64,000 nt of DNA from Macrostomum lignano (GCA_002269645.1 NIVC01000282.1:434001-498000); one strand, 5' to 3'; shown: positions 25,801 to 64,000, counted from the first letter of the stretch. Numbers and translations: made by a program. The notes: generated from the sequence alone by a model not told the origin.

Positions 25801-28800
25801 AGAAGTAGTTGAATTAGTGGGACATCGCAGAAGTGCGCCAAAAAGAAGTAGTTGAATTAGTGGGACATCGCAGAAGTGCGCCAAAATGAACTAGTTGAAT
25901 TAGTGGGACATCGCAGAAGTGCACCAAAAAGAACTAGTTGAATTAGTGGGACATCGCAGAAGTGCGCGACCAAAAGTTTTAGAAACCCATTGTACTGCGA
26001 ATTTTAGGTTTAGTTTAGCTTTGTTTAGTTTAGCACAATGATATGTTGCATACACAAATTTCTCCCTCCCACTCTCTCCATTTTCTTTCATTATTCCCGA
26101 TAAGATCAGAAAAAGCCCAGTAAATAATAAAATGCCCGAAATGGCTGCATTTCAGTCTGGTACACTTCGACTCATGGATTTGCAGATGGATGAGAGGCTG
26201 CAGCTTCGTCGTCATTGTGATCTCCGTTGTCGCCAACGTTGGCGTCCTCATCATCGGCATCGATGTCGATCGTCGCCACCTCATTTCCGCTGGGTGCCAA
26301 TTTGAGCGATTTTTGTAGTTTTCGCGCAATACAGAATCCAGTGCGCTTAAACACGGCGGCATACTTTTGCTTTGCCGTACACTACGGCGACCGGCGGCCC
26401 GTTGGCGGACCGTTGCACCGCCTCGCCGGACTCCAGTACAGTTTGGACATATCGATCGCACATCATGCGCAGGCAGTTGGCCATTGCCTTTTGCGCCTCA
26501 GCGGGCGTGTCACCATGGCTGGCGCCTTTTGATCTTTGTTGCGCCAGGTACGCAATCATTGTCGTGATGACAATGCGGCAGCGGTGTATCTTGCTGGGCT
26601 CTTCGGCCCGTGCCGGTAGCTGCTTGGCCACTCGCTGCAGCACGTCGACCACCACAGCTTTTTCTGCAGCTTTGTCTGACGCCATGTCGATCCAGGCTGC
26701 TGGCCAGTTAAAGCCATTGGCGCACAGTGGTGCACACGATGGACAAACCGATGCCGCACTATTTGCTGCGCCGGATGGCGGCTTCGCGGGTGCACAGTCT
26801 GAGTCCACTGCACGTTCTGCGCCGGATGGCGGCTTCGCGGGTGCACAGTCCACTGCACGTTCTGCGCTGGATGGCGGCTTCGCGGGTGCACAGTCCACTG
26901 CACGTTCTGCGCCGGATGGCGGCTTCGCGGGTGCACAGTCCACTGCACGTTCTGCGCCGGATGGCAGCTGCGCAGGTGGCAGTTGCGCAATGGAAAATTT
27001 AATGGCCCGTTGAATATCATCGGGTGATCGGGCTGCCGAACTTGCTTCTGCGCCGGCTAGACCAGCTGATGGCACCGGGTGGTCCAATTGCAGCAATCGC
27101 TTGCTTATGTCACTAGCCTGCATAGCAACCAGGGCCAGTTCGCCATGCAGGCCATGGAAGCAATCTTGCAGGTCGCAGAGAGTCGCTTTGCGATCCGATT
27201 GTTGCAGCGGCAGCTCCTGCAGCATACAGATGACTGAACAGCTGCTATCAATATTTTTCAGAATATGTGTGACATTATCTTTTAATATGCTTGCAGACCG
27301 CATTATTCTATCTAGCGAGTCTGCATCCGCCATAGTAGAATTAGAGTTAATCTGGAATGGTTAATTGTAGGATAGCATAATTACAAGAACAAACAGTGGC
27401 GCAACCAGGGGGGGCGGGGGGGGGGGGCGGTCGCCCACCCCTTAGGCGGGGGACCAAAAAAAAATCAAAGGGGGGACCAAGCGAATTTTCGCCAAAAACA
27501 GAGCCACCCCTCCGCCGCCTCCCCCCCCCGGGACTTTAACCTCAGAACCCGCCCCCCCCCTTGAAAAATTTCTGGTTGCGTTACTGAGAACAAACACAAC
27601 CTAAGAAGTTAAGAAATTTGTCAGCTAATTTTTTGTACCAAAAGTTTTTTATGTGCAATATCTACCGGTGAAGAATAAATGAATGATAAAATGTTGTCTA
27701 ATTAGTACGTTGTCGTTATCAGGTGGCAGAAAGTCATTTTTGTAAAATTTTGGACATTTTTATAAGCAAAAGACATAATTAAGTTTCTGTACCTTTTAAA
27801 AACAAATAGAAAGCTTTGGAGGGTTGAAAAAAACTATAGATAAAAGTATAGTACTTGCATCATCAGATCTAATGCTATTATGATTTTATCTAGATAAAAA
27901 TACTGGTGACCAGAAAATCTGTTATCTATTTCATATATTGGTACTTCAAAGTTACAAAAAAAGTGTTATGACCATAAGGCTGCCTTTTATGTATCTTTGT
28001 TGCCTTTTTGAGTTTAATTATATATTGCAAAAGGAGTATGATTTCTGAAGATGTTCTTAGTCCAATTAAAAAAAATGCATTGCAAAATATTCTACATATA
28101 TTATATGTTTGAAAAATTTTATAAGACTTTAACTGTTTAGTTTCTATATGCCAAAAATCCTGTAATCCTGTTAGGCCTATTACAAACATAAGTGCCACTC
28201 AATGCTTAGGGCCTAATAGCATCTATATTAATAATGACATCTATATGAAAGTTTGGCAATCTTTAAGTTTCATTCATTAAATTATTTTTTCAATGATTTC
28301 TGAACTATCTTGCTCTGAGATGATTATTTTCGAGCTCTCCAGTGTACCCAGCCCTTTCCTAGCTGAGAAAGTAGCAGTTTTGTTAAGAAAGTTTATAAAC
28401 ATATTCTTGACAAAATTATATATCATTTAAAATATTGCTCCAGTATATTCTATTATTATATTTCATTTTATAAGTAAAAAAAGCAGTTATGCCTGTGCTT
28501 ATATGGAATGAGCCTAAAGATTTTGTATTCACATAGCCACAGACATGAGACAACTTAATCGACAGTTCACTGAAAACGTAACAGTAATCATTGTAGTAGC
28601 AAATTTGGCTCAGGCTTAAGGAGCCTGTTTTGCCAGTATAATTCGATGTATTTAGTGTTTGTTCAAAAGGTTAAATTTTTACAGTCGAAAACGAAAAAAA
28701 GATTTGAATCGGTGACTTGTCCGCCATATTGATTTTTAGTCCTGTTAACGACGTCGTGTTTTTTTTCACTACGCGTTTCTCACTTGTCGCACAATACTAA

Positions 28801-31800
28801 CCTTCTAATTCCGTAGTTGCGATTGTCATTTTAAGAGGTATAAGATGGTACCTACTTAAGAGAATCCTATCTTACTATCACTATAGCAGTATATTTCAGT
28901 GGATCGTATTTCTAGAAATAAATTTAACGCAGTGTATTCATTTTCCAGTGAAGCAGGTATAAACGTCATGTATTTCATGCAAATTTACAGACTGTAGCCA
29001 GCTGCCCATATTGATCAGAATATGAGATGAAGCCTTGAACAGAGCAATGTGAGTTAAACGATGGCGTACAGGGGGGCGACGGAGTCTAATATTTTTGGGG
29101 GGCACCAGGCACAGGGCAAGGGGGGCACAGGTACCTTCATAATTACTGCTAATTAGTGCCTAAAATCAGAGGAAGCACTAAAAATTACCGCCTGGACTTA
29201 TTTTCTGGGGGGAGGCACGTGCCCCCTGTGCCGCAAGCTCCCGCCGCCCATGATGGCGTATGTTTCAGACAGTTGGCATCATTAAAGCACAGTTATGCGC
29301 GATAATAGATTAATGCATTATAAATGTAGCCAATTGGCTAAATGTACTACTGCTAACAAATATATACTACTACGCCAAAAGAAACTAAGCGACTATCCGC
29401 CATAAGTCAATGTCCCTATGCTGCGAAGGAAAATTGTTCATGTGGCAGAAACGCCACGTGAGAGTCCGACACGGCACAAGATTTGACGATGGTGGCAACC
29501 GGGTCCAATTCGAAGTAGAACTTGGACACCTCGTCGAAAGGGCTTCGTCGCAATCGACGCACGTGCGCAAGCGCACAACCGCCAAGTAGGCGACGCCCAG
29601 AGAAGCAGTAAAGTGGATTATCGCGTGGCTCCAAGTACTTCTCGGTCAATAAACGACGAACAACCAATTTTGCAGTGCCATCTGCAACGCGAATCGACTC
29701 CACTCGACCGAACTCAAATAATGTCGCGCCGCAATTAAATGCGATGAAGCAGGACGCAGATCTGCAGAATTGCAACTCAGGTCGAAAAACCTCCAGCTGG
29801 CATCCACTGTGAAGTACAGCCCTCGTGAAGCCACGTCCCTGTCGGCGCTCGTACAGCCGCACTCCACCGGCGGTTGTCAATGCCGGTCTATCTGTCGCCT
29901 TTGGGTTGGAGCTATTGAAAATGTCTCTGACACCCAATAGTGAGCTGAGATAACGAGTCGCCGCACGTCGAGTTAGCTGCTTTACCAACTGTTTGTCTGA
30001 GTGTCGCGTACCGTGAACTCGCGAGCGCAAGCGACCATGCATAGACTCGAAAAGTCCGGCTGATACCCGATGCAGCGGTCCTAGCAGTAGAGCATACGCA
30101 CTAAAATGCTCACATACCTGGTGAGCATTATACGTCTGTGCGGCTGCTCCGAAAAGGTTGCGCAGCTCTTTATAAAAGTGCTTCAGGTTAGCGTCAGCTC
30201 GCAATATCTGCGTGTGCGGTGCGCCATCGAGACAAAGCCAGAAAATAGCAGACGACAGAAGCATAAAGTGCTGGTAGTAACTGGCATCAAGCAGGCCATC
30301 CCCTAGCACCATTGGTCCGTAACAAAGTAGCCACGCTTCGAGCTCGTGCCCACGGAAGTGCCCTAGCTCATGCATCGTGCGCGGGGCCCGCTGATGCGAC
30401 GCCGGCACGTGGATAGTCGCCAGCCTAGTGTTAATATCTGAAAGTCGTCTGGACAAATCCGGTGCGGGACACACTCTCATGGGCTTCTTGCCAATTGGCA
30501 CAAATAACTGCTCCATAGTGCGTCGGACAAGACCAGTCAGCAATTGATGCAGGAAACATGGTGGACAACCTTGAATGTAGTCAAAGCCCTCAAGCCGATA
30601 AAGTGGCGATACCGCTATGACTCCCAGGTTGTGCTCCGCTGATACCGGTTTAGTGTTTGCCAGCATCACGGTGTCAGCCAGATTGCGAACTGTTGGCTGC
30701 GTGACATTGGCAGCCAGAGCTGCATGCATCGCATCATCCGACATTGCGCATGGATATATTCTCGCACTGCCCCCACGTTCTGCGTCGTGCAGGGAGATAG
30801 TGTAGCAATTGTCGCACCCGTACTCGGCATTAAACTGACGCATGCATTTGGTTTCTGCCCGTTGCGGAGCGTCTAGAATAAACATTAGTGGGTGCAGTCT
30901 AATTCTTCCACCCTGTTTGCCATCGACACCGGCACCTTTCATGAATTCAATACCAACTGACCGCAGTGCATTCAGTTGCTCTACTAGCCAAGGGAGATAC
31001 GCAGTGGAGCGTAGTTTCCTTTTAGCGGACCAGAAGCCGGCTACAACGACATATCTACTCTTCATGTTGTCGGTTACTTCGTTAATGCTGACATAAACTG
31101 GACACATTTCCATAACAGACCTTTTAAAAATTGGAAAGCCATCGATGCACACTGAATACGTGAGGTCACTTCGTGAGCCCAGTGCAATAGACCGCTTGAA
31201 TGCCGCATACGCAGTTCCGCTACCCATGTAAAGACGTCCCACGTTCGCCGGCTGATCGACGGGATATATTACGTGGTCTAGAAGATGGCATTCTTCGATC
31301 ATCTGTCGTACTTGGCTGCCTATATCCATTCGCCAGAAGTGCCCAACAGACTCTGGCGATTCCAATCTAGCATTACAATGCGGACAGTGATTTGGGCGCG
31401 GTTGTTGCATCTCGCGATCGCAGCTCAGACAATACACTGAAGGTCTGCATCTCGTGTAGGAGTACGGTGTCAGGTTTAGCAAATTGTCCAGCATATGACG
31501 GGTCTGTGGAAACGCAGCATTTACAGGAAGCACGGCCTTTGTGTAGGCAAGCAATTTGTCGACACCATGTACAGAAAGATTTTGCGCAAAGGCCAGACAC
31601 TGAGCTAGGGTTCCAATTGCAGCGTATGACACAGTAGCGCCAGGATAGGCGACCAACTGGCAAAAGTTACGCAGTTTAGCGTCGTCTGAATCATAATCAT
31701 CGCCGTCACCGTCATCGCTGTATTCGGCATCGTCGCTAGGCGCTTGGCTGGCAGAGCTTTCGGTAGCTTCGCTGGCATCGCCGGCTTCACTAGCAGTTTC

Positions 31801-34800
31801 GCTGGCAGAGCTTTCGGTAGCTTCGCTGGCATCGCCGGCTTCACTGGCAGTTTCGCTGGCAGAGCTTTCGGTAGCTTCACTGGCATCGCCGGCTTCACTG
31901 GCAGTTTCGCTGGCAGAGCTTTCGGCAGCTTCGCTGGCATCGCCGGCTTCACTGGCAGTTTCGCTGGTGGAGGCTTCGCCGGTAGATGGCGGTTGTGAAG
32001 TAGCTTCGCCGGTAGATGGCGGTTGTGAAGTAGCTTCGCCGGTAGATGGCGGTTGTGAAGTAGCTTCGCCGGTAGATGGCGGTTGTGAAGTAGCTTCGCC
32101 GGTAGATGGCGGTTGTGGAGTACCTTCGCTACCGATGTCGTCGTCTGGATGACGGCGCTTATTACCACGATTCGTCTGTGGATTTCCAATGGCGGCGCCC
32201 ATTGCAGTCGTTCCAGATTGTAACCACTGTTGTCGCCTTTGAAATAGAAGCTGCACTGTCTTGCGTTCTCGAAATCGTTTCACTCTTAAACGAGTCATAA
32301 TGGCGCGGCGTTGCTGGGCTTCCATGATAGAGATTTTTGTTCTTAATAATGATTCTTATCCTCTGCAAAAGTGGCAAACGTTCATGAGAAATTAGTCAGT
32401 TGCTTCGTGGGTTACCGTCACTTCTCCTTATATACTGATTTGAAAGAGAACGGATCCCTGGGCATAGGTAATAAATTTGCTTCCCTATTCATAACTATCA
32501 CGTGTCCATACCTAACTATATATAACTGGGTATCCATGTGACCTATTTCAGGAGAGGCTACTCTGTAAAATTGTAAAGTAAAAATTCAGGCAACAATAAC
32601 ACGTGCGTCACGCCGCACTCAAATTTAGCAACGTAGTAGCAGTCTATTATGCAATGAAGACGACAACAGTTGGTAGAAAGCGACAAGTAGTAAACTCCAC
32701 AACAGAACAAAACGGTCACAAAATACGGTAACAGTGAACGGTAACATGTGACCCTGAACAAACGGTCACAAAATACGGTCACATTGATCGGTAACACGTG
32801 ACCCTGAACAAACGGTCACAAAATACGGTCACATTGATCGGTAACGTGTGACCCTAAACAAAACGGTCACAAAATACGGTCACATTGATCGGTAACATGT
32901 GACCCTAAACAAAACGGTCACAAAATACGGTCACATTGAACGGTAACGTGTGACCCTAAACAAAACGGTCACAAAATACGGTCACATTGATCGGTAACAT
33001 GTGACCCTAAACAAAACGGTCACAAAATACGGTCACATTGATCGGTAACATGTGACCCTAAACAAAACGGTCAAAAAATACGGTCACATTGATCGGTAAC
33101 ATGTGACCCTAAACAAAACGGTCAAAAAATACGGTCACATTGATCGGTAACATGTGACCCTAAACAAAACGGTCACAAAATACGGTCACATTGATCGGTA
33201 ACATGTGACCCTAAACAAAACGGTCACAAAATACGGTCACATTGATCGGTAACATGTGACCCTAAACAAAACGGTCACAAAATACGGTCACATTGATCGG
33301 TAACATGTGACCCTAAACAAAACGGTCACAAAATACGGTAACTATGAACAGTCACATGGTTACCCTAAGCAAACCGGTCACAAAATACGGTCACATTGAT
33401 CGGTAACATGTGACCCTAAACAAAACGGTCACAAAATACGGTAACTATGAACAGTCACATGGTTACCCTAAGCAAACCGGTCACAAAATACGGTCACATT
33501 GATCGGTAACATGTGACCCTAAACAAAACGGTCACAAAATACGGTCACATTGATCGGTAACATGTGACCCTAAACAAAATGGTCACAAAGTACGGTAACA
33601 TTGAACAGTCACATGGTGACCCTGAACTAAACAGTCACAAATACGGTAAAAAATGGTAACTGGTGACCGTAACGGTAAAAAACACGGTAACAGCCCCTTT
33701 TTGTGACCGTTTCGTTTTATACGGGTCTGGTAGTACGAGTCGTCACCCAACAACGGCTCATATTGTAGGACCCTGGGGAACCAGCGGCCCATATTGTAGG
33801 ACCCTGGGGAACCAGCGGCCCATATTGTAGGACCCTGGGGAACCAGCGGCCCATATTGTAGGACCCTGGGGAACCAGCGGCCCATATTGTAGGACCCTGG
33901 GGAACCAGCGGCCCATATTGTAGGACCCTGGGGAACCAGCGGCCCATATTTTAGGACCCTGGGGAACCAGCGGCCCATATTGTAGGACCCTGGGGAACCA
34001 GCGGCCCATATTGTAGGACCCTGGGGAACCAGCGGCCTATATTGTAGGACCCTGGGGAACCAGCGGCCCATATTTTAGGACCCTGGGGAACCAGCGGCCC
34101 ATATTGTAGGACCCTGGAGAACCAGCGGCCAAACCAATCAAAGACCCTAGGGAGCCAGCGGCCCAACCCAAGGAAGGATTCTGGAGCACAGCGACCCAAC
34201 CAAATGAAGGACCTTGGAGCACAGCGACCCAACCCAATAGAGGACCCTGGAGCACAGCGGCCCAACCCAATAGAGGACCCTGGAGCACAGTGGCCCAACC
34301 CAATAGAGGACCCTGGAGCACAGCGGCCCAACCCAATGAAGGACCCTGGAGCACAGCGGCCCAACCCAATGAAGGTCAGTTAGGAACCAGCAGTGGAAAG
34401 AAGCCAGGTCCTTTTAACCAAAAAATGTCAGCAATTTGTCACCTTAACAGACTTGTCCGCCTGCTTGAACCGATGAATCATCTGGTGCACCTCGGTCATG
34501 AATGCGTGGAAATGCAATCTACGCTTGGCAAGCACGGCAGAGCTTGGCTCGCCACCAGAACCTGAACAGCAGTTGAAAAACAAGTCCATTAGCATGCTTT
34601 TGCCGCCGCCAACGCCGCCATAAATATAGAGGCCGCGTGGACCAGCCAAACTTGGCTGCGGAGCTGACTTGGCTGTCCATCGCTGCATCAGCCGCGACAT
34701 CAAGCCGGCAGATCCGGCAGCTGCTGAAGATGCTGCTGCTGACGGTGCAGTCAGCAGATGACCGCCGGTCAGTAGTTCCGCATGCAGACGGTCCAGCTGT

Positions 34801-34973
34801 TCAAGCACCATCAGCTGATGCGAGTCCTGGCGCAGGTGGCCCTTGGCAACAAGACTGGCATAGACTGCTGTAGGCGCCGATTCATTACTAGCAGTAGTAG
34901 ATGAACAGAATCGAATGAAAGCAGTGTTGCAGACTCTGCTTCTGCGACAAATGTGGCCAATCAAACCTGGCAT
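22872..34973 (-). CDS. AFG1L: AFG1-like mitochondrial AAA+ ATPase (LACE1), about 483 aa
   Basis: Exons 34973-34443, 24859-24204, 23136-22872. Walker [19 protein letters not shown]; [12 protein letters not shown]; [51 protein letters not shown]; C-terminal [21 protein letters not shown]. Intron 1 (about 9.6 kb) contains the transposon. Confidence 0.93.
23230..24185. repeat. 33-bp minisatellite AAAAGCGCCAAAATCTACAAAACGACACACCAC in AFG1L intron 2
   Basis: About 28 units with variant units interspersed. Confidence 0.96.
24920..25600. repeat. Left subterminal repeat array of the transposon (about 52-bp units, GT(G/T)ACCG motifs)
   Basis: (GTGACCGTTCAATGTTACCGTATTTTGTGACCGTTTGTTCAGGGTCACAT)n, the reverse complement of the right array. 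Confidence 0.92.
25785..25965. repeat. About 42-bp tandem repeat inside the transposon
   Basis: CGCAGAAGTGCGCCAAAAAGAAGTAGTTGAATTAGTGGGACAT x4. Confidence 0.9.
26172..27333 (-). CDS. Transposon accessory ORF2 (unknown function), probably split by a 1-nt frameshift near 26355
   Basis: ATG-initiated 328-aa GC-rich ORF (27333-26347) with an internal ([15 protein letters not shown])x4 repeat. An overlapping frame continues [36 protein letters not shown] to 26172. Same strand as the transposase, between the TIRs. Confidence 0.6.
27394..27586. mobile_element. hAT-like MITE (193 bp) nested in the CACTA element
   Basis: TIR CAGTGGCGCAACCAG / CTGGTTGCGTTACTG; exact 8-bp TSD AGAACAAA (27386-27393; 27587-27594). 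Confidence 0.88.
27620..28450. mobile_element. AT-rich dispersed repeat, copy A (inverted homolog at about 37130-37820)
   Basis: For example GTACCTTTTAAAAACAAATAGAAAGCTTT and TATAGTACTTGCATCATCAGAT are present as reverse complements at about 37540-37630; the homology is colinear over about 700 bp. Confidence 0.8.
29069..29252. mobile_element. hAT-like MITE (184 bp) nested in the CACTA element
   Basis: Imperfect TIR CAGGGGGGCGACGGAG / CTCCCGCCGCCCATG; exact 8-bp TSD ATGGCGTA (29061-29068; 29253-29260). Confidence 0.8.
29416..32325 (-). CDS. CACTA/EnSpm-like (CMC, Transposase_21/DUF4218-type) DDE transposase, 969 aa, uninterrupted
   Basis: Zn-finger CLSC..CPHC; first catalytic block [25 protein letters not shown]; second [25 protein letters not shown]; [13 protein letters not shown]; [16 protein letters not shown]; [10 protein letters not shown]; [16 protein letters not shown]. 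Lies between TIRs. Confidence 0.9.
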   Translation of the reverse strand: MEAQQRRAIMTRLRVKRFRERKTVQLLFQRRQQWLQSGTTAMGAAIGNPQTNRGNKRRHPDDDIGSEGTPQPPSTGEATSQPPSTGEATSQPPSTGEATSQPPSTGEATSQPPSTGEASTSETASEAGDASEAAESSASETASEAGDASEATESSASETASEAGDASEATESSASETASEAGDASEATESSASQAPSDDAEYSDDGDGDDYDSDDAKLRNFCQLVAYPGATVSYAAIGTLAQCLAFAQNLSVHGVDKLLAYTKAVLPVNAAFPQTRHMLDNLLNLTPYSYTRCRPSVYCLSCDREMQQPRPNHCPHCNARLESPESVGHFWRMDIGSQVRQMIEECHLLDHVIYPVDQPANVGRLYMGSGTAYAAFKRSIALGSRSDLTYSVCIDGFPIFKRSVMEMCPVYVSINEVTDNMKSRYVVVAGFWSAKRKLRSTAYLPWLVEQLNALRSVGIEFMKGAGVDGKQGGRIRLHPLMFILDAPQRAETKCMRQFNAEYGCDNCYTISLHDAERGGSARIYPCAMSDDAMHAALAANVTQPTVRNLADTVMLANTKPVSAEHNLGVIAVSPLYRLEGFDYIQGCPPCFLHQLLTGLVRRTMEQLFVPIGKKPMRVCPAPDLSRRLSDINTRLATIHVPASHQRAPRTMHELGHFRGHELEAWLLCYGPMVLGDGLLDASYYQHFMLLSSAIFWLCLDGAPHTQILRADANLKHFYKELRNLFGAAAQTYNAHQVCEHFSAYALLLGPLHRVSAGLFESMHGRLRSRVHGTRHSDKQLVKQLTRRAATRYLSSLLGVRDIFNSSNPKATDRPALTTAGGVRLYERRQGRGFTRAVLHSGCQLEVFRPELQFCRSASCFIAFNCGATLFEFGRVESIRVADGTAKLVVRRLLTEKYLEPRDNPLYCFSGRRLLGGCALAHVRRLRRSPFDEVSKFYFELDPVATIVKSCAVSDSHVAFLPHEQFSFAA
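32710..33700. repeat. Right subterminal repeat array of the transposon
   Basis: (CGGTCACAAAATACGGTCACATTGATCGGTAACATGTGACCCTAAACAAAA)n, about 17 units. Confidence 0.93.
33745..34380. repeat. 32/33-bp minisatellite in AFG1L intron 1 (two related unit types)
   Basis: GGAACCAGCGGCCCATATTGTAGGACCCTGGG x about 11, then CAGCGGCCCAACCCAATAGAGGACCCTGGAGCA x about 7. Confidence 0.94.
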
Positions 34974-35685
34974 AGCAATTCTGCTTGCAAAAATATTTCG
35001 GGTAGTTTGAAGCCATGAATTTATAATATTTTATAGGAATTCTAAAGGATTAAACGTGCCAAAAAAGTAATATCTCAGTGATAAATATTTTTATGGCTCA
35101 ATTTTCTATGGCTTCTATGGCTCAGATTTTATTACATGTATTCAAGGCAAGCCAATGCACAATCACTGAGATGCTATACTTACTAGAGTTCTGATTAGTC
35201 CAAATTAGTTCCCAACCTCCATGACCAAGAATATCCAAGATTTGCTAGACTCTATATGAGTGCATATGATGTGCATTAGTACTAACCTGTGTATAAATGC
35301 TCTTAGAATGACACAAATATTTTAGGCACTAACATGTATTTTATAGCTAAATAAAAAAGAAACATGGATTCTCATCTTTTTATCATTTAAAACACAACAA
35401 ACATTTTACTAGATATTAAAACACAAACACAAAATTTTACTTATTATCATAATAGGGCCTAATATTTTATTTTAGAATACACTTTATACTATTATAAAAG
35501 CCTTGCTTTGCCATAACTATTGTCTAAAAAACTAAAATAGGAAAGATATAAAAGTCAAGTTTTATTTATAATAAAAATATTGTAGTGACTTTTATTATAT
35601 AATTTTAATATTGCAAAAAGTAATAATAGTAATAGTAATAATAATAATAATAATAATAATCGATTACAAGTATCCTAAATGGGTC

Positions 35686-36237: not shown

Positions 36238-36828
36238 CCAGGGTCAGGATCGTGTACCGCTGTACGCCGGAATGAAAATTGCTTACATAGCTCATGCATG
36301 CCAATGTATACCAACAAACTTTTTATCGCATACAAAAATATGCCAAAATAAAAATTACAAATTACAACTAATATTAAAAGCTTGCAAAATTTTAATATTC
36401 AAACAACCTATGTGTTAAAACTAAAAATCTTTTTTACTAAACTGTAGAGAACTAGTTCATTTTAACTATTTTTGTTTTACTTTTACTTTCTTGGAAAAGT
36501 TAAACCCGGTTTTTTAAATTTAGTTTTCCAATTTTTTCGTAAAGGGCCGGCTATTTTTTCTGATCAAAATTTAGCTACTGTAACTATGTACATAGAAACT
36601 ATGCCAAATGCAAACTTAATCATTTTTGTATGCTAATTATGTAGATTGATTATTGGGACTCAGAACTTTTGGTCCCACCTGCTGGTCTTGGCAATCTCTA
36701 TACGCCAAGCTATATACCAAGAGGGCAAGCCAGGCGCCTTTGTACGCCAAGTTATATACCAATGTGTAATTTAGGTCCCTCTGTACGCCAGAAAATTCTG
36801 GCGTACATGTATACTATCCGGAGTCTGG
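36238..36828. mobile_element. Non-autonomous TIR element (591 bp) with 8-bp TSD
   Basis: Ends CCAGGGTCAGGATCGTGTACCGCTGTACGCCGGAAT / reverse complement CCAGACTCCGGATAGTATACATGTACGCCAGAAT; TSD TACTAATA (36230-36237; 36829-36836); internal TGTACGCCA motifs. Confidence 0.75.
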
Positions 36829-37129
36829 TACTAATATAAGCAAAGCACATATATACATAATTAGGCCTATACTTGTTTAACAATTTTCTTTTGATGTTTG
36901 CAAAGAATTTAAGTGAAAACTAATTGCAGTGTAAGATATATACTACTAGTATAACAACATAATAATCAAGATTTAAAAAGTAATTTTTAAAGTCCTTAAA
37001 CAGGGCCTATTGATCTATTTATTGTAAAAATTGATATAATTACTATTACCAATTTAATTAGACAAATAACAAAGGGCCATTCTATATAATTATAGTTGTA
37101 ACATGACAGACTATTATTAAATGAAATCT

Positions 37130-46581: not shown

Positions 46582-46729
46582 GAGGAAGGCGGAACCGTTG
46601 AAGCCCTCGCCTGCGTCTGCTTGCTGTTAGACTGAATTCTGCTGGGTTGGCGGCAGGCTGTTCGGGGCTGAAGAAAAAGGCAGGTGAGACGCACTGTATG
46701 GTTATACTAATGTAGCCTCTTTTAATGAC

Positions 46730-50250: not shown

Positions 50251-53043
50251 TTCCTATTGATTTGAAAGTCAGGACTGCTGCACACCCTATGTGTCTCTGA
50301 GTATAAACACACTTGTGCAAGTAACAATTGGCATAATGGATGGCATTTAGCTTTTAATAATTGATAGCATATTGTATTGCGAATATTAAATGTGAATATT
50401 GTTGAATATTATATTATATCTATACTTACAATTAAAGGCCTAGCTATTATAATAATAAAAAAGCTAGTCCCCCTAGTGAAATCAAACTAGCTAAATACAA
50501 TGGCTATATCTAACATACATGAATAAAATGCACTATAATATGCAATTAAAAAAATAGCTGTATACTTTTAGTGGGAGGTCTGAAAAATTGAAATAGCAAA
50601 ATTTAATAAAGCCTAAGAGAAACAAAATATTTAAACATTCATATTGTTACAAAAAAGCAATAAAAATTTCTATAATTCCTTTCAATTGTCTGTGATTTTA
50701 TATCATTAAATAATTTTATACTTCTATATATATTTAAAATTCATTTTAATACTTTTATTTTCTAATGATGTAAAAACATAATTGCTATATAATATAATAG
50801 AATATAGTTTATATTAATAAATGCCTAAGGGTGGCATACTATTCTCTTTGGGTATATATCAGAAGTTTAGTGTTGGGTCAATATATTTGGTATTGGCTAA
50901 GATTAGGATTTCAATTTTGGCTAGAATCCTTGAATTTAGGATTATAAAAGTGGGATCAAGATCCCAACTGACTATATTATAAGCATATATAGAAAGATTA
51001 GATTATATGATTTTTTATGATTAAGAAGGAAAATTAGGATCATAATTTTTGCTAAGATCATAGGATTTTGGCATTGGGATCTATAATACTTCTAGTCCAA
51101 ATTGCCAATCATGACTCTCAGTTTCCCTAAGTTCTCAGTTCTTAGTTTTCAGTTAATTCTCAGTTAAGTATAATCATATACTTTGGTTAAGACTCAAAGT
51201 AGTCAAAGAAAGTGGTATATACTTGTTATATAGTATGAATAGATTAAAAATAACATTTTGGCCTAAATACATATTTGGCCTAGCTTCTCTGTATATTGAG
51301 ATTCTCTGTAGAATGATTATAAACAAACACTCCAAATGCTTCTAGAACATATAAAGACTAAAGCCAGATATAAATAAATAGAATAATTTAAAATAAAAAT
51401 TTTAGTCAAAACATATATTATTTTAATTACCATATTGGAATAAGTAGACAAAGGCATCCACTGTCTGACCATCCATTGCAATTTTGGAATTTTCTAGTGT
51501 TGCTTTGGGGCTGGAGTCAAAGCAGGTGGTGTTGCAACATGGTGCAGGTTTTAGGTAAATGGCAGGAGTAATTATGACTGTCTTAAAAAGGCTAAATGCC
51601 TCATCATCTAATTAGTACTACACTTAAATTCAATGCAAAAGTTACCATGTTCTGTGTTACATCAAATTTTTGAGCTACAATTTTAGACCCTATGTCACAT
51701 GTCTGCAGGTTTTCTATATTTATTATCCAATAGGATGGAATTATTTTTAATTATTTATTAAAGTTAGTTATATTTTGTTTACGTAAGTATGTTTGCTATA
51801 TTAGATCTATATTTTTATATAAAGCAAGTTGTCTTGATGATCAAATAGATGCAAATAAAACCATTTTTACTTTGTTTACTAATGTAAAAATGGTTTAAGC
51901 TTTTGTTTTTTATCTAGTATGCATATAACATGATTGGCAATTTGGCAATTGTAAAGAAATGCTTTTTAAAATTATTTTTCAACTTAAATGAATGCCAAAG
52001 CACATTTATCTAGGTTTTTGTATTAGGTATGCCACAACATGTTAAAATTAAAAATGGCATAATGATTTTGATGTTGGCATAATAATTTTTTGCCATTATG
52101 CCATTGCCATATTAGATGCCAATGGCATGCCTGCTAGTTGCCAAACTGGCAAGCTATTATCATTCCCTTGTGAATCTGAAAAGAGACACTAATATAGGCT
52201 CACAAAGTGCTATTTTACCTTTTATGCCAATGGCAATGGCATGTTGAAATTGAAAATGGCATAGGCCTAACAATTTTGATGCTATTATGCCAATGGCATA
52301 AAAATTTAAAAAAAAACCCAGGTGTTTATTGTGATGGGAGACACATTTAATAACATGAAACTATTCAGTTTATTATAGTTTTAGATCATCTGATCAAATC
52401 TTTGATCATCACTTGTATTTGTAATAACTAGATGGCTAGACATTATCTCTGCCAACTTTTATTATGCTCCCATGGCAATTACATCAGGCCTAGAAGCTTT
52501 GTAATATGGATTTTACAATGCATAAACTAGCCAACCTAATGGCCAGCCACAGGATATCATTAACTGGCTTGCTACATACTACCTGATCTACTTACCTATG
52601 TACTTATATACTATCTACTAATTGTATCACTGTCTACCTAACAAGTTGTGCTGTGTTTATAAATTAGATTTGTGTCACTAAATAAATGTGTTTCTTATCA
52701 CAATGTCAATAAATAGGCCTATGCTTTGGTATTTATTAGTTGAAAAAAATTAAATGTGCACTTCTTTAGAAATTAGATTTGCTAGCAATTTGGCCTCTAT
52801 TATATTATACATACATATGTAAGCTTTTTAATATAAACTAAGGTAAGTTGCCTTGCTTACATTTTGACATTATTTAAATATAAAATTTATAATATAAAAT
52901 ATAATTTTGTGATACAAATAAAGTATGTTAGGCCTGCAAACCAAATGCAAGGTATAGGACCTAGGCATAGGCCTAGCCATATAGGTAGGCAACAATGAAA
53001 TATTTTTTCTATCACTCAAATCAAAGTTAATTGTTGCAAATAT

Positions 53044-53219: not shown

Positions 53220-54833
53220 GCAAATATATTTGTTGCCACGGCAGGCAAAAATTGAAAATGTACAAAACTAAAGTCATTATTGCTAAATAGCAAAAAATTG
53301 TTGCTGCATCTTGTACTTGTACCCCACAAATATGAAACCGTAGTGTTCATTATAATTTCAGCTTTTTCAATGTTATTCACGTGCTGTCACTGTCTATGCC
53401 TGGTTAAAAAAGTGGCTGAAAGATCAATGGAAATGGAAAGTGGGTGCAAATGCAAATTAACTTTAGAACACAGAAAGATTTAATGGAAAGTCGAATACTA
53501 GGGTTAGGCATACAATTAATTTTAAAAAGGCTTTACCAATACATAACTATGCAAGCCTAGACCTAGCGTAGAAGGGAGGGTAGTTATTAATTTACCGCCG
53601 TAGTAGTTACTACTGGATTTTACTATCTATCAGTATCACGGAATTCAGTTAAAATTTAATTAAGTTCTCGGAAATTTTAGCTGTTTAAAATTTTATTAAC
53701 TAATGTTGTTAGGTATAACAACTTGCTTGCATTCATTTCGCGCAGTGTTCTAGAAAGGTAAAGATAATATATAAAAAGTCAATCTAACTTTTATTTATAA
53801 TGTTTTAGTTTTGTAACGATCTCAAATCAACCCACTCATTTTTTACTACAAGCTTGCATGCAAGCACGGATGCACTGCATGAACCCGATATCGCAGAACC
53901 ACATTGAATGTCAACATGTAAAATAACGCATTTGATTTGGCATTCTTGAGAATATTTATTTTCATCTGTACACGTCATAATCGCTGTACTGTTGTTGACA
54001 CGACCAAAAATCAATTAATGCCGATCGACTTATTCATTTAATATATAAATTTTATCAGCCTACACGTATATTATTTCCCTAGGCTTTATTACCGACTGGC
54101 CACCCATGCAAAATTTATCCATTTTTTTGGTTCGGGGTCGACCCCGATCCTGAACACCTTTCGGGAAACCCGAGAACACCTCAGCTTCGTGTCTTACATG
54201 TACATGTACATGTGTTAGTATAGTACATGTTATATTTCTGGAATAGATTTCTGACCAGTCAGAAAGTCTCTCGTGTCCAATTTTATGCATCAGCAAGAAG
54301 GTTGTGCAGGATATTCCAGAAGATCCGACGAGAAAGCGGTGACTAAGAGATCGAAGCTCTACGTAATCCCGGTCGGACACAGCTAGTGGCCGGATCTGGT
54401 TGCTGCACTGCTCTTCTTCGAGAAGTAGGCCCTATGGCCCTGAGAGCGCATGAAGGACCCCCAAGTTGACATCGCCCGATCTGTTTTCATACGGTGTCAC
54501 TCGACTCATTACCATATTTATGTTTAACCTTTGTATTCAAAGTCTAAATTTAATTTCGCATTGGAAAACCGGCGCCTTATATGTATATTAGTATACATGT
54601 AATAATTTAGTATATAGGATTTTGTTTAAAGAAGATAACTTTACTCATGACCAATTTATTGCTGATTTTTTAATTCCAGTTAAACCACAACTCGAATACA
54701 TTTTGCTGCCTCTAAATCTAACGTCAAAAAGCCTTTTTAGTCAAAATTATTACGATAGTAATTGTGAACGCTTCGCTAGAAAAAATCGCTTGGTGACATT
54801 GAAGCCCAGCCGTCATTTTACTATCGCTGTCGA

Positions 54834-55941: not shown

Positions 55942-55975
<34 letters not shown>

Positions 55976-55993
55976 CATGTAGATAGATAGATC

Positions 55994-56053
<60 letters not shown>

Positions 56054-56075
56054 CATGTAGATAGATAGATAGATC

Positions 56076-57071: not shown

Positions 57072-57875
57072 TGTCCCTTGCTCGATAGGAAATGGCACTT
57101 CAAATTGAGAAATTTTCCTGAATTAGTAAATTACGGGGAGAAAATATAACTGTTGCTTATGCCTAATTTTGTTATATAGAAATTGAGCAACACAAAAGCT
57201 TTTTAAAAAACTGCAAACTGTAATAATCCTTCTTCAACTAAAACGTTTATTGTCACGCAATCAGACAGAGTGAATTCAATAATTGATTCCGTATCTCTTG
57301 AAGATGGTGAAATAATCAAAATCCATTTTTTCATTTTTCTATTGGCTAATTTTCTCTATCCATTAAAAATCAATTTACTTGTGACGCATTTAGCCATCAC
57401 CGCGGTCCCCCTTTGGGAAAAAACGCTAAAATCAGTTTATACGAGAACATCTACCAGTAGTGCTTTTCGAATTTCAAACGACAGAGAATGCACACTGAAT
57501 GATGCATGATGCAGTTTAGATAGAAAAGCTACATTCAGCAGCATGTTCAAGCACGTCTCAACTGTACATGTACGTGCATGGGTTGATGCAATTTTAGTCT
57601 GGCTCCAGGCCCCAGTTTAGTCTGGTGAGGAAAGTGGAGAGTTATGGCTAGAGATTATTGGATTAAAGCTGAAACTTGTTGACTGCACTGCATGGTTTCT
57701 GGGTGAAATTGTAACATGTTGCTGAGCATGGTTGCACCAAGGACTACTAAGGTCCTTATATAACGAAGTGTTCCAAGTGGCCTTGAGTTGCACGTACATC
57801 ATATTTAAGCGTTGGTCCAGGGTCGTCGTCGCCACCGTCGCCACAGGTCGGAGACAGGGGGGACACGCCCTCCCC

Positions 57876-58875
57876 CAGTAAAACAACAACAACAAAATAC
57901 GCTGTCAGGTGGAAAAATGCAGCGTCACAGCGCACGCTTCAGAGCCGGGGCGCCAGCGTCGGCCAGCAGGCAGTCGACGAAGGTGCCTGCAGCGTTAGCA
58001 GCAGCACCTCCTGCACCGGCTGCGGGCAGTAGGACTCGGCGCGGATGATGTGGCCTGCCAGCTGGAGTCGCCGAAGTCGCAGCAGTTCACTTAAACGGGC
58101 ACTTGGCCGGCGCGGCGATAAAGTGCCGCGTTAGTGATCCGCTCGTCGCTGATCTTAAAGGCGGCGTTGGCGTTGTAGATAGCCATAATGGCGTTGTACT
58201 GTGCTACCAGAGCAGCTGTGATGACGCCGGACGGCTGTCGGACTCCTTCGAGACATCCTCCGGTGTGCTCCAGGGGGACACTCTAGCGCCGTTCCTGTTC
58301 GTCCTGGTGCTTGACCGGGTGCTACGAACTGCTCTTCCTACCGACGAAGACGGCTTCCTACTGTGGCGACGCGTGGGTCGACGTCAACCGGAGAAGCGTC
58401 TCAGCGTGCTTGGCTACGCTGATGACCTCGCCCTGCTGTCCTCGACCGCAGAGGGCGCCCAGCGCCAGCTGGACAAGCTGGTTAGCGCTGCGGCGAGCGT
58501 CGGCTTGGTGGTCAACACAAAGAAGACCGTTGTGGTCTGCGTGCCGGGCGACATCGAGGCCGCAATTTTCTGCCGAGGCGCTGACGGGCAGGTAACGGAG
58601 CTTCCGCGCTGTCAGCAGTTCGTCTACCTCGGCGGTCTGGCACCTGACGTCCGCGAAGATCTGCGGCGTCGCCGCGGGCTCGCTTGGGCTGCCTTTCGCT
58701 CTGTGAGGGCGGTCCTGCATTCCGAGGCCCTGCCTGATCGCCAGAGGGCGGCGCTGTTCCAGGCGGTGGTCGAGACCGTCCTGTTGTACAACGCCAAGAC
58801 CTGGACGCTGACGGATTCGCTAGAACAGCAAGTCAACGCGGCGCACGCTGGCCCGCTGCGCGTCGCTCAGTAAAA
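57876..58875. mobile_element. 5'-truncated, internally inverted RTE-clade non-LTR retrotransposon
   Basis: Plus 58203-58862: SDSFETSSGVLQGDTLAPFLF..LGYADDLALL..GLVVNTKKT..FVYLGG..VETVLLYNAKTWTL..HAGPLR. Minus 58165-57895: AAFKISDERITNAALYRRA..LRRLQLAGHIIRAE, with frameshifts. (TTG)n tail; direct repeat CAGTAAAA at 57876-57883 and 58868-58875. Confidence 0.85.
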
Positions 58876-58989: not shown

Positions 58990-59220
58990 TAGCACCCGCG
59001 GCACCAAAATGAGTGCCTGTGGTGCCGATTGAGTGCCTCCGGCGCCAATTATCGAGTGCCTGTGGCGCCGATTGAGTGCCTCCGGCCCAAATTATCGAGT
59101 GCCTGTGGCGCCAACGATCGAGTGCCTGTAGCGCCAATGATCGAGTGCCTGTGGTGCCAATTATCGAGTGCCTGTGGCGCCAATGATCGAGTGCCTGTGG
59201 CGCCAATGATCGAGTGCCTG
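58990..59220. repeat. GATCGAGTGCCTGTGGCGCCAAT minisatellite, left part
   Basis: Same unit and orientation as 61421-61810. Confidence 0.92.
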
Positions 59221-61420
59221 CCCAGGGCCGGAATCATGGCCAGATCATGCATGATCCATGCATGCGCCCATCCATGCATCATCCCTGATCATCTATGGAC
59301 CGATCCATGTTCATAGATGGTTTCATGCTCATTCCATGGATGGCGGAATAGCCATACATGATCATTGATGTATTACTTTCCACACATGGACATGTATGAT
59401 TGTTAATTCTGGCTGTATATACTACTCGTTAAGGCACATTTGAGTTTTAAAAAAATATACCCCAAAGAACTATAGTTCAAATTTCAGAACAAGACCTGCA
59501 ACATACAAAGTACCACCACAATAATACTTCAGGCACTACTTTAAGGTATAACTTAGAATCAACCATTGGCACTATTTATTTTCTATACTCTTAGGACAGA
59601 CTTCGACTGACTTAATTTTTCTTCTAAAGTAAAAACGTTTTTTTAATTGCAAATAATTCTTTACAGCACATTTGATTCTATAGTGTAATATTAAGTAGAA
59701 TGTTAATGTTAAATATGAAGAAAACTATACATTAGGATAACACAATAGTTTTAATTATATTCATTTTATAAAACAAAAATAGTAGCCAAATACACAAGAA
59801 CTAAAATTCAGCATTCAGAAGACAGACAATACATTAAAATTAAGTTTTGATTGAATTTAAACAAAAATTACAATACACATTACACAATGACAAAATGCAG
59901 CATTCAGAAGAAAAACCATATATTAGAATAATACAACAGTTTTTATTGAATTAAAAGACAGCAATAAAATCACTAAAATAAAATAAAAACAATACATTAA
60001 AATAAATTAAAATAATAGTTTTCATTGCAATAAAACAAAAATAGCAATACACAATAACTAGAAATGCAATAACAGAAAAACAATTAGGATAATTGTTTCA
60101 TTGCCTCTGGTAATGAATTGTAAATCACTTGGATGGCCCGTGACCATGTTGGCATAAAAGATGGAAAGCAAACATTATATTATTTATAGTATTTTTGTAA
60201 CAAAAAAATCAAAATTTCTATATATCAATATTATTGGAATAAAGCTTAATGATAATCAGTTAACTTTTAATGAACTTAACAAATTAAACATTTTTGTAGC
60301 TTAATTAATATTGAAATAGGAATAGATATAAAAAGCTCTTGGATATCTACATACTAGAAATTTTATTCAATTTTTGACTAATTTTGACTGTTTTCTAAAT
60401 AGTAATATCTAGCCATAGGCCCTACAATATTTTAGACCAATATCAAAAGAACAAAGAAATTAAATACTTTCATTGTGGTTTAATACTCTTTGAAGTTTTT
60501 AATTGAAAATTGCTATATTGGCCTAGCATCTATTTATCCTAGGCCTAACCTAAAGGAGTAAAGCTAAGGAAAAAGTTAAATAATCCCAGCACCCAGCTTA
60601 CCAATTAGGTTATATTTTCACTCTTATTATATAAAGTAGGCCTAATAAATTTCATAGTTAAAAATTGGTCATTTAGCCCACCTGGCCCTATCTTCAGATA
60701 AATAATTTACATCATGGCATTAGACTGATTAGGTGGCTATGCCTAGGCTAGGGCTAGAATAGGGCAGCAGTAGGCTTGTCTTATTAGGGTTAGGGTTAGG
60801 CCTATTAATTATTACATATAGTAAATAGGTTTGGCCACAGGCTAGGTCGCCTAGCCAGTAAAAATAATAGACTGGCTAAATTATAAGTTAGGCTATAAAA
60901 AGATGAATAAAACTGAGTACATATTGTCTATTGTCATTTGCCTTGCCCTTAGGCCAGACTCTAGGCCTTGGTCTTACTAATACAAATAACTAAGAAATAA
61001 TAACTATTAATTAGATATTAGATTAACCTAATTGGCTATTTGCACAAGCCTCAACCTCAAATGTTAAATTTCGAGCTTAAAGTTGAGGTAATGAGGTTAA
61101 GAGCATGCATGCAGCGGGCGGGGCGTAGAAAATTAATGGTTTAAAAACGTAAAATAAAAATGGCGGAAACTAAAGTACAACAAATATATACTCAAGATTT
61201 ACAAATCAATAAAATCAGCATCATCTTTATACATTTAAAGAAAATTTTTAATTAAATAAAACTTATTAGTTACGTTAACTAAATTTTTTCACGTTAGGCA
61301 TCCATGGATGATTTCAACATGGACGCGGACAAATGATCCATGTATGATTGTTGCATGGCCATCTATAAATCAACCATGGATCATGCTCCATGGATGATTA
61401 GTAATGATTCTGGTCCTGGG
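59221..61420. mobile_element. Non-autonomous CCC-terminated (EnSpm-like) element, 2200 bp
   Basis: TIR CCCAGGGCCGGAATCAT vs CCCAGGACCAGAATCAT (15/17); 2-bp TG duplication; subterminal CCATG(C/G)ATG motifs at both ends; AT-rich non-coding interior. Confidence 0.7.
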
Positions 61421-61810: not shown

Positions 61811-64000
61811 TCGATTGATTGCCTGTGGCGATCATTTACATCCAATCCAATTACAAAGTATTATGCGAAGGGTCCAATTCAACGAGCTCTTTTGCTGAGA
61901 GTTAAAAGATCGAACAACCAGAACACACTGTATGTACATGTACATGTATGAAAATGAGAAATGAAATTAATAATAATTGATTACACCTGTCCTGATATTA
62001 TATGAACACGTGCAAGAAACGATAAATTGTGACAGTGTGGTAGGAAGGACCTGTATAAAGTAAAAGTAAATTTGCAGTGCTTTTTCACAGCTATTTTTTA
62101 ATAGGTCTGCGGTCCGGACGTCGGCTGATCAAATTATGTCGCATAATTATTTCGCTTTTCTATAGTATTTTCTAGTCTAATATTATGCAAATGTACATTT
62201 CATGTAAGCAACTCTCCAAGTATCGTTACATGCTAGAAACTAAAAAAGGTTATGCATAAGGAAAGCAGCCCACCACAGTTACATGTAAGTTCGGGGCCCC
62301 TCGGAATGTGTTAATTATACAGAGAGTCAAAACATTATAATACAGAATTATAACCGGATTATCAGTTCAGAACCATGTGACATTTAAAGCTGATTGCAAA
62401 CAAAGTAAATTTGAACGCAAAAGTTAGAATAAAAAACAAAGCGACGTTGTTGAGTGACAACGCAAGCTTGCTATAACGAAAGAATATTTTCAAACGAAGC
62501 TTCTAAGAAAATCACGCTTATTTTCTCATTGCTATAATTAATTAATTAGGCTTAGGCGTTCGTTCGATATAAATCTGTCAAAAGGCTTTATCTATTCCTT
62601 GACCAAGAAATCAGAGCTAGGCCCCTAGCTATATTTAAAGTAACAATTTTCTTTAGAGTAATAAGTAGACCTACCTATCTTATTTATAGATGCTCATCAT
62701 GGTCATGCTCTCTAAGTATGTGGCCTACCTAGCCCGCCTAGCCGCTAGCCCTACCCTAGGCTTAGGGGCCTGGCCTATGACTATGACTAGGCCTATGTAT
62801 GTGTGTATGAGCTATATGCCTATGACATGTATTGGTTCGTATTCCTGGGCCTAATGCTAGGCCCAAATATATCATTGAACTAAAGCCTAAAGCTTTACTA
62901 TTAACTATTTCATTTGACTAATTTTCAAGGATAACCGATAAGACATATTTTTATTTAATGGGTTTAAATACACAAGTAAATACACAGATTGTTTTTAGGC
63001 ATGAGGAAATAGAACTACAATATATTAAAACATAGTACAAAAATATTTTTTTAAGTGAAGTTAATAACTAAAAAGTATCTTACAATAGGCCTAATATTAA
63101 TTAAAATGTGTCATGGTGTGGGCATGGTATTTTTAATATTATTATTTTAAAGTAAAATTTTTATTATTTCTTATTTTTATAGTAAAAATAAATAATTTTA
63201 GGCAGTTTTTATTGTTATGGAATATGGTAAATATATAAATAACAAAATTTTTTTTATGGTTAACACATTCATATATACAATACTATCTGTGCCTATGGTC
63301 TTTACTTAATGTAACTATATAAATAGCAACTGTTATTTTTTAGGCCTAGTCACTATAGGTAGGAAGCAAAATGGCTATTTTTATGGTCATGTGGAAGAAA
63401 TTTCAGTTAAATTACAATGTAATAGTTAACAATTACAAATTACCTAAAGTTCATAGTGTGGATCATGCTAAGTGCACGCAAGAAACAACCCAAAGCTAAT
63501 TCCCAAAAGCACGCCGACGACAAGCAAATGCATGCCAATGCACGCCAATAAATTAAAATTCAAATTGAAGTCAAAAAACGTATTTTAAATTGCATTGTGA
63601 AAAACAAAGCAACAAATGATGTACAAAAGAAATGATATATCTTTAAAAACGTGTATTTCTCATACATTAATTTATTTAACAGTCTTATACACTGTTTATT
63701 TACAATAGTTTTTTTTCAAAAGTTAAATACAATAATACGTATTTTATGTCTGCTTACTATTACATTAATCAATTAATCAATCAGTTAGTCAAATCTACTA
63801 TCTCAGTCAGATGGCTCTCACATTGGTAACCAAAGTTGTTATAGATCCTTAGTAGTAAGAGACCAGAATACCAAGGACACTCAGATATACATCATACTAA
63901 AATATTTTGCAAATGATTTTCTTAAAAACTGTGTATATAAAAGTATAAATATGTATTAATTGATATTCTGAACTCAGATCAAACTTTATTTTTGTGCATT

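Follow-up and report, generated by a model that had tools for sequence, protein, structure and literature searches.

Transposons of the Tc1/mariner superfamily, which is defined by TA duplication (typically AT in ISL2EU; PMC4122938), leave recognizable scars when they excise. Cleavage of the non-transferred strand takes place a few bases in from the element's end and creates 3' overhangs; after end-joining, the footprint retains the first or last 2–4 element bases flanked by TA, as in the Sleeping Beauty scars TACAGTA and TACTGTA, and in some hosts these footprints are highly stereotyped (PMC6943129). In rice, excision traces were recovered by sequence comparison between O. sativa and O. glaberrima, where clean excisions made up only 8 of 94 cases, most scars carried deletions or filler DNA, and occupied copies outnumbered scars (PMC4423477). 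Here we describe a 64-kb stretch of the Macrostomum lignano genome (GCA_002269645.1, NIVC01000282.1:434001-498000; hereafter the window, with positions counted from its first letter) in which the octamer TA-GGCC-TA, TAGGCCTA, recurs. All results cover this window and a single 25-kb M. lignano locus from NIVC01001566.1, termed L001, that was used for comparison. The octamers are probably, although with considerable room for doubt, footprints left by the excision of Tc1/mariner-type cut-and-paste transposons that target TA, one of which has GG...CC ends and leaves broken TAGG-3' ends that telomerase sometimes extends. Excision scars as such are a known kind of sequence; new are their density, their uniformity, the inferred GG-ended donor and the telomere-repeat extensions.

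TAGGCCTA occurs 16 times in the window, compared with 0.73 expected occurrences, and none of 100 dinucleotide-preserving shuffles reached this number. A form with one additional base, TAGGGCCTA, is found at 28207 and 35453, and its reverse complement TAGGCCCTA at 54426 and 60416 (4 together, 0.32 expected), which suggests donor ends of GGG...CCC. After masking of tandem repeats, 18 of these 20 GG(G)CC(C) sites fall within 17.8 kb of AT-rich DNA, where their density is 9.4 per 1000 TA dinucleotides; elsewhere it is about 1 per 1000. No octamer of this masked AT-rich DNA exceeds its expectation more strongly than TAGGCCTA (14 sites, about 0.3–0.7 expected), and TAGGCC and AGGCCTA head the ranking of 6-mers and 7-mers; relative to dinucleotide and Markov models, the octamer is enriched about 20–50-fold. 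Where the local GC content is low, most GGCC tetramers are framed as TA-GG(G)CC(C)-TA or are one mismatch off. Variants of the junction word with one mismatch (n=26) all lie beyond 35.9 kb, and by a rough steady-state estimate their number is about that expected from continuous input followed by neutral decay. An all-against-all comparison of the 310-bp contexts of the sites yielded only overlaps of neighbouring sites; the flanks are unrelated, and the sites therefore represent independent events and not copies of one repeat. Apart from the TA itself, the sites show no clear target preference; A at –2 and T at +2 are weakly favoured. No relevant publication turned up when the literature was searched for the octamers or for words that mark head-to-head telomere junctions. 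The sequence-only reading from which we started had placed all 16 octamers exactly and had noticed their excess in AT-rich blocks, which the masked counts bear out; of its two TAGGGCCTA sites, 28207 was correct and the one at about 35454 lies at 35453, and it had not listed the minus-strand sites at 54426 and 60416. The sites and the two repeat copies used below are the following, with the strand where one is assigned:

27671–28515 (plus), copy A of an AT-rich dispersed repeat, nested in the large transposon at 24891–33726
37073–37744 (minus), copy B of the AT-rich dispersed repeat
28172–28179, TA-GGCC-TA junction, polarised insertion of 6 bp, absent from the copy at about 37258, which reads TGTTGTTAC
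28207–28215 (plus), TA-GGG.CC-TA junction, polarised insertion of 7 bp; paralogous copy TTTA-ATAGC
35453–35461 (plus), TA-GGG.CC-TA junction, local GC 0.24
36862–36869, TA-GGCC-TA junction
37490–37497, TA-GGCC-TA junction, polarised insertion of 6 bp; the copy at about 27942 reads GGTACTTC
37708–37715, TA-GGCC-TA junction, polarised insertion of 6 bp; the copy at about 27706 reads ATTAGTACG
38553–38595, about four junctions in 43 bp of a short (GCAAGTA)n-like repeat: TAGGCTTA (decayed), TAGGCCTA, GGCCCTG (decayed) and TAGGCCTA
43167–43174, TAGGCCTA by substitution or chance, not a junction; same length as CAGCCCCA
52262–52269, TA-GGCC-TA junction inside a 204-bp TA-flanked element with terminal inverted repeats (TIRs), 52097–52300
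52714–52721, TA-GGCC-TA junction
52929–52975, cluster of TAGGCCTG (decayed), TAGGACCTA, TAGGCATA (decayed) and TAGGCCTA at 52968
53499–53512 (plus), extended junction TA-GGGTTAGG.CA-TA with an 8-nt arm, C-side decayed
54426–54434 (minus), TA-GG.CCC-TA junction
60416–60424 (minus), TA-GG.CCC-TA junction
60540–60557 (minus), TA-GGCC-TA junction with the minus-strand arm TTTA-GGTTAGG/CCTA
60637–60644, TA-GGCC-TA junction
60784–60804 (plus), extended junction TTA-GGGTTAGGGTTAGG.CC-TA with a 14-nt telomere-repeat arm
62700–62870, densely packed junction fragments, some intact and some decayed, among them TAGGCCTA at 62788, TAGGCTTAGGGGCCTGGCCTA and CCCTACCCTAGG
63086–63093, TA-GGCC-TA junction, local GC 0.23
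63341–63348, TA-GGCC-TA junction

Comparison of repeat copies allowed us to observe directly that the word arises by insertion and that insertion is specific for TA. The inverted repeat pair that had been recognized from the sequence alone is real, with limits refined to 27671–28515 and 37073–37744 (minus strand); the copies share 86.6% identity over aligned columns with about 25 gaps, and four of these gaps are GGCCTA or GGGCCTA at a single TA, at different sites and two in each copy. At 37708, ATTA[GGCCTA]GTA faces ATTAGTA in the paralogous copy, at 37490 GTA[GGCCTA]CTTC faces GTACTTC, and at 28207 CTTA[GGGCCTA]ATAGC faces TTTAATAGC. To these three examples, which the earlier reading had quoted correctly, we add TGTTA[GGCCTA]TTAC at 28172, which adjoins an 8-bp duplication and faces TGTTGTTAC. 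Together with the lack of homology between sites, the alignment upholds its central claim of independent insertions of 6 or 7 bp at single TA dinucleotides. Empty sites of the form GTAC, TTAG and TTAA, set against filled sites of the GTA-GGCC-TAC type, show that the duplicated TA originates from a single TA; the duplication comprises TA alone, as one of 3 bp is incompatible with GTA-GGCC-TAC. A 7-bp repeat at 38.55 kb contains GCAAGTA[GGCTTA]GCAAGTA, a once-mutated copy of the same 6-bp insertion that breaks the period.

It could be argued that the word has no common insertion origin and results from substitution (TpA-creating decay), a dispersed repeat, a selected protein-binding motif or an assembly artefact. 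Substitution did produce the octamer at 43167, which lies in a GC-rich context in one of a pair of repeats resembling short interspersed elements (SINEs) and differs from CAGCCCCA in the other copy by three substitutions without any gap; variants with one mismatch are also common. The caution of the sequence-only reading about this site was correct, but its wider proposal that TpA-directed decay converges on the word has this one site as its basis, and a single substitution or chance case is what chance predicts. In AT-rich DNA, all four polarisable events change the length by +6 or +7 at TA, the flanks are non-homologous, the enrichment far exceeds base-composition expectations, and decayed copies and nested doubles reflect a real evolutionary history rather than an artefact. 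Selection on a motif would not create the word by the same 6-bp insertion each time. We consider an origin of this kind scarcely credible and largely refuted already. A dispersed repeat or the terminus of a miniature inverted-repeat transposable element (MITE) was rejected as a source in view of the unrelated flanks and the lack of any recurrent sequence after TAGG. A substitution-driven word, similar to repeat-induced point mutation, was likewise rejected, because a gapless paralogue alignment was obtained only at 43167, while the four AT-rich events are insertions. A sensitive self-comparison of the window detected no repeat pairs spanning a site beyond these two. The SINE-like repeat itself is GC-rich, 370 bp long and present in two direct copies (10858–11227 and 42895–43264) with 87% identity, the second of which runs into a minisatellite with a period of 22 bp (43134–44049).

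When all 256 TA-N4-TA words were ranked in the masked AT-rich DNA, only two outliers appeared, TAGGCCTA (28 counts on both strands, 0.5 expected) and a second word, TA-CATG-TA or TACATGTA (18 counts, 1.2 expected), and the third-ranked word reached only 4. TACATGTA is present 12 times in the window, where 1.0 is expected, and 7 times in the independent locus L001, where 0.26 is expected, although 3 of these 7 are homologous copies within a repeat. The occurrences in the window are:

18401–18408, TACATGTA in a GC-richer context
35133–35140, TA-CATG-TA junction
36804–36811, TA-CATG-TA junction
54195–54208, double TA-CATG-TA-CATG-TA
54594–54601, TA-CATG-TA junction
55974–55981, TA-CATG-TA junction, CATGTA in a (GATA)n microsatellite
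56052–56059, TA-CATG-TA junction 78 bp further in the (GATA)n array, probable duplicate of the event at 55974
57565–57572, TA-CATG-TA junction
61935–61948, double TA-CATG-TA-CATG-TA
62280–62287, TA-CATG-TA junction

CATGTA interrupts a perfect (GATA)n array at 55974 and 56052 (GATA-CATGTA-GATA, with GA-TA-CATG-TA-GA in place of GA-TA-GA), which amounts to a clean gain of 6 bp at a TA; the same GATC variant follows both sites, which probably represent one event duplicated within the array. Both enriched words are palindromic and conform to TA + XY + Y'X' + TA, so that two classes of symmetrical insertions are directly observed. Such a form would result if an inverted-repeat element left two bases from each of its ends between the two copies of TA. 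Were all four inner bases derived from a single end, palindromy of both words would be a coincidence of about (1/16) squared. CA...TG ends are common in Tc1-like elements, and judged from its sequence, TA-CA-TG-TA would fit a Tc1-type scar in which 2 nt are kept from each end. The TACATGTA class and the insertion into the (GATA)n array thus indicate that TA-targeted insertion followed by excision leaves scars in this genome. The doubles TACATGTACATGTA at 54195 and 61935 and TAGGCCTAGGCC at 38569 look like re-use of a TA made by an earlier event. Mixed GG/CA junctions were absent from the window, half-footprints and 5-base scars (TAGGTA, TACATA, TAGGCTA) were not enriched and are taken as chance, and the single-sided products TAGGTA, TAGGA and TAGGT were not enriched either. 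The absence of mixed junctions and the lack of single-sided products argue that the two arms arise together, as from the ends of one element. In the pile-ups at 60730–60860 and 62700–62870, intact junctions are accompanied by decayed pieces (GCCTAGGC, CCTAGCC, TAGGGCTAG, GGCTAGGTCGCCTAGCC), which suggests repeated events at the same spot.

These features can be accommodated by a simple excision model. An element would insert at TA and duplicate it; on excision, the transposase would cleave the non-transferred strands within the element, at a distance of two or sometimes three bases from its ends, so that each flank is left with TA and a 3' overhang of 2–3 nt. End-joining that retains both overhangs would yield TA + XY + Y'X' + TA with a net gain of 6 (or 7) bp. 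Two element lineages would be required, one with CA...TG ends that generates TACATGTA and one with GG(G)...(C)CC ends that generates TAGGCCTA and TAGGGCCTA. The GG-ended donor may be a low-copy, persistently mobile element whose scars build up in neutral AT-rich DNA. The broken flank of this class, TAGG-3', matches the telomere repeat TTAGGG and would thereby serve well as a telomerase primer, and telomerase might occasionally add one or two repeats before joining, which would result in TA-GGGTTAGG(GTTAGG).CC-TA. This resembles the known Tc1/mariner footprints, exemplified by Sleeping Beauty, in which a duplicated TA likewise surrounds the outermost 2–4 bases as a product of joined 3' overhangs, and TACATGTA fits elements with CA...TG ends. 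Unlike the products of Tc1/mariner excision assays, the scars described here are visible in k-mer counts and occupy about 1% of the TA sites in AT-rich DNA. They further differ from such footprints in that some of them carry telomere repeats and in that the GGCC donor is an inferred element.

Telomere repeats adjoin the GGCC-type junctions at three sites, on one arm each, in the form TA-GGGTTAGG(GTTAGG), and the register of the repeat from the TA can be read directly from the inserted bases: TA-GGGTTAGGGTTAGG at 60785, TA-GGGTTAGG at 53499 and, on the minus strand, TA-GGTTAGG at 60540. TTAGGG occurs as a dimer only once in the window (0.16 expected), joined directly to the TAGGCCTA at 60797 in the string cttaTTAGGGTTAGGGTTAGG/CCTAtt. 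At 53499, the junction TA-GGGTTAGG/CATA has an 8-nt arm in telomere register, and at 60540 the other strand reads TTTA-GGTTAGG/CCTA, with a 7-nt telomere-like arm that lacks one G. Among the non-tandem GGTTAGG heptamers in the window, 4 of 6 abut CCTA or CATA. Counted as G-strand bases after TA, the arms measure 2 nt on both sides in 16 junctions and 3 nt on one side in 4; the long arms measure 8, 14 and 7 nt, equivalent to 2 nt with one or two repeat units added, and all end in ...TTAGG at the junction, whereas arms of other lengths in telomere register were not found in the window. Extended arms constitute about 3 of 44. A (TTAGGG)n probe labels the chromosome ends of Macrostomum (PMC5068713), and in mammals telomerase is documented to insert telomeric repeats at internal breaks, aligned in register to 1–8 nt of microhomology (PMC2246262). 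Telomerase is the simplest source of the long arms and has presumably been involved at least sometimes. As in the primate and rodent insertions, hexamers are found at an internal break in a register set by microhomology, and here the 8-nt and 14-nt arms start from TA (PMC2246262). The primate and rodent insertions are rare, one-directional arrays of several repeats, in contrast to the frequent head-to-head junctions with mostly 2-nt arms and a duplicated TA observed here.

This raises the question whether telomerase alone makes the GG arms, with no GG-ended transposon involved. A break would expose T or TA 3' ends on both sides of a TA, pairing with the telomerase RNA template would lead to addition of GG or AGG, rarely with one extra base (GGG) or with one or two further rounds (GTTAGG each), and head-to-head joining would produce TAGG/CCTA; the break itself might even stem from the excision of any element that duplicates TA and whose overhang was trimmed. 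At breaks ending in TA, telomerase would then routinely add a first-round GG as a cap to each 3' end, and sometimes one or two full repeats. The distribution of arm lengths, with nearly all arms at 2 nt, four at 3 nt and then 8, 14 and one of 7, is the pattern of a stop at the template end, and the TA is in register with TTAGGG, as is the microhomology at mammalian break sites (PMC2246262). The association of GGTTAGG heptamers and of the single TTAGGG dimer with the junctions also speaks for this possibility, as does the failure to find a donor transposon in the window. However, both arms are always present and one-sided products are not enriched, so that extension would have to occur on at least about 85% of ends by our own estimate. 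The 24 CA-3' arms of the TACATGTA class are never extended, TACAGG...CCTGTA does not occur, and the parallel TACATGTA class itself would be left without explanation. Random breaks should furthermore give +4 (A/T) and +5 products and AGGCCT in any flank, yet AGGCCT in AT-rich DNA has T...A flanks in 14 of 18 cases, and each of the four polarised events added 6 or 7 bp at one TA. We therefore favour GG...CC transposon ends, because both arms are present, CA-3' arms are not extended, the flanks are biased and the TACATGTA class requires a transposon anyway, and we regard telomerase as sole source of the arms as possible but unlikely.

A donor with telomere-like inverted terminal repeats (GGGTTAGGGTTAGG...) that targets TA would explain the long arms as larger remnants of its ends. 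Consistent with such a donor, the outer register is always TA/GGG TTA GGG, and the minimal arms GG and GGG are the first 2–3 bases of the same string. Remnants should nevertheless stop anywhere, but ...TTAGG is the end point of all three long arms (about 1 in 200 by our own estimate), the opposite arm is in each case just CC, and no such terminus is intact in the window or in L001. This variant appears quite improbable to us. A side observation in L001 concerns three copies of a composite repeat at 1200–2200, built from 'gatttcaaggc' units of about 30 bp, a conserved GCTACATGTAG... segment and interstitial telomere repeats. A (TTAGGG)n tract of about 55 bp lies at 1550–1610, and degenerate tracts lie at 1858–1950 and 2106–2130. 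Fluorescence in situ hybridization (FISH) reported no interstitial telomeric sites in M. lignano (PMC5068713); the tracts in L001 show that short interstitial sites do exist despite the negative FISH result.

Several observations weigh against excision of a GG-ended transposon as the origin of the octamers. GG termini are atypical of described Tc1/mariner families, and we know of no family that has them. The scars are unusually uniform, with 16 canonical junctions and 4 with one extra base, and this differs from rice, where clean excisions were a small minority; also unlike rice, there is no occupied copy within the 64 kb. The full-length TA/GG...CC/TA elements predicted by the sequence-only reading were not found in the window when TAGG...CCTA pairs were screened for inverted ends with at least 13 of 16 matching positions, and no recurrent sequence emerged when the 24-nt stretches that follow TAGG, all of them from either strand of the window, were clustered. 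Nor did a tblastn search of the window with the Sleeping Beauty and Mos1 transposases, for which approximate sequences served as queries, detect a remnant of a Tc1/mariner transposase. The ends of the one mariner-like element encountered in M. lignano are of the form CYGGG and do not match the GG class. The GG arm is exactly what telomerase adds to a TA-3' end, and a transposon origin is thus not the sole reading. The polarity of the insertions, finally, relies on parsimony in one repeat pair and two short repeat arrays without an outgroup. The interpretation as excision footprints, as it had been proposed initially, has thus gained from the TA duplication, the symmetry and the second word TACATGTA, and has been weakened by the missing donor element and by telomerase as a competing source of the GG arms.

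Neither TA/GG...CC/TA nor TA/CA...TG/TA elements with TIRs were present in the window or in the 25 kb of L001, which is a weak test as it covers 89 kb. By our own estimate, about 0.3 scars per kb genome-wide would need about 0.002–0.02 hops per genome per generation, given about 10% neutral divergence. At such a low rate a low-copy element suffices, and the fact that 64 kb contain no donor therefore lessens the support for excision as the origin of the scars but does not refute it; a non-replicative element would stay low-copy while scars accumulate. The mariner-like element mentioned above lies at 19050–20139 of L001, is 1.09 kb long and has 18-nt TIRs and TA flanks. It is decayed, with frameshifts, and has a weak transposase match to the DDE region (E 6.6e-4); its inverted ends read C(T/C)GGGT(T/C)GTGCAAAAATGTAATG. 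Judged by these sequence features, it would show that the Tc1/mariner superfamily lives in the M. lignano genome. Between them, the screen of TAGG...CCTA pairs, the clustering of sequences after TAGG and a general search for TA-flanked TIRs yielded nothing in the window but subterminal repeats belonging to the large transposon and the unrelated 204-bp element at 52097–52300. The latter has inverted ends with 15 of 18 matching positions (TGCCATTGCCATATTAGA / TGCCATTGGCATAATAGC), hosts the TAGGCCTA at 52262 and looks like a MITE. TAGGCCTGCAAA was considered as a candidate terminus and discarded, since it was seen twice and showed no enrichment.

If the octamers are excision footprints, a single kind of transposon-driven event accounts for 4 of about 25 gaps in one repeat pair and for a scar at about 1% of neutral AT-rich TA sites, a mutational signature of a model flatworm that is strong enough to appear in k-mer counts. 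This would imply at least one cut-and-paste element with long germline activity in Macrostomum that is possibly still active. Minos did not mediate integration in M. lignano, and transposon-based transgenesis tools have failed in this species (PMC5730564); an endogenous element that targets TA efficiently would thus be a lead of practical value. To judge from the telomere-repeat extensions, telomerase may gain access to internal breaks in this stem-cell-rich, regenerating animal, and from the arm lengths one could deduce where the template of the Macrostomum telomerase RNA ends, with no data other than the genome sequence. Should telomerase capping turn out to be the source of the arms, TAGGCCTA would represent a genome-wide signature of telomerase in double-strand-break repair, a sizeable share of the small insertions in AT-rich DNA would be explained, and the template boundary of the telomerase RNA could be read directly from the arm lengths.

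The scars are set in a window in which AT-rich non-coding blocks (24–35% GC) interleave with GC-rich exons of genes for TRAF, an AFG1-like ATPase and others; two host open reading frames (ORFs) of the window share 80–86% identity with M. lignano proteins. Tandem repeats make up 27% of the window, in agreement with the published description of the M. lignano genome (PMC5730564). Minisatellites with periods of 8–51 bp are very dense throughout, and Tandem Repeats Finder (TRF) masked 17.4 kb of the 64 kb; several of the minisatellites are intronic, and some give long artificial ORFs. Scans for Rfam families and tRNAs gave no matches in the window. Further features are:

8938–9933, 12880–13850, 23127–24284, 40510–42200 and 46700–48000, examples of minisatellites
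24200–24835 and 34428–34973 (minus), exons of the AFG1-like ATPase gene that flank the large transposon

The large DNA transposon at 24891–33726 (8.8 kb) is nested in an intron of the AFG1-like ATPase gene and is 92–99% identical in segments to a copy on NIVC01001566.1 (L001 8856–16822). Its ends start with CCCGTATAAAACGAAACGGTC, and its 3-bp target duplication is TCT in the window and TAA in L001. It contains inverted subterminal tandem repeats of 50–51-bp units that extend over 0.6–0.9 kb, a 969-aa ORF that matches an M. lignano protein and has no Pfam match, and a second ORF of 328 aa. A reverse-transcriptase fragment at 58103–58873 (Pfam RVT_1, E 1.5e-12), which belongs to a decayed retroelement, lies between two scar-rich AT blocks.

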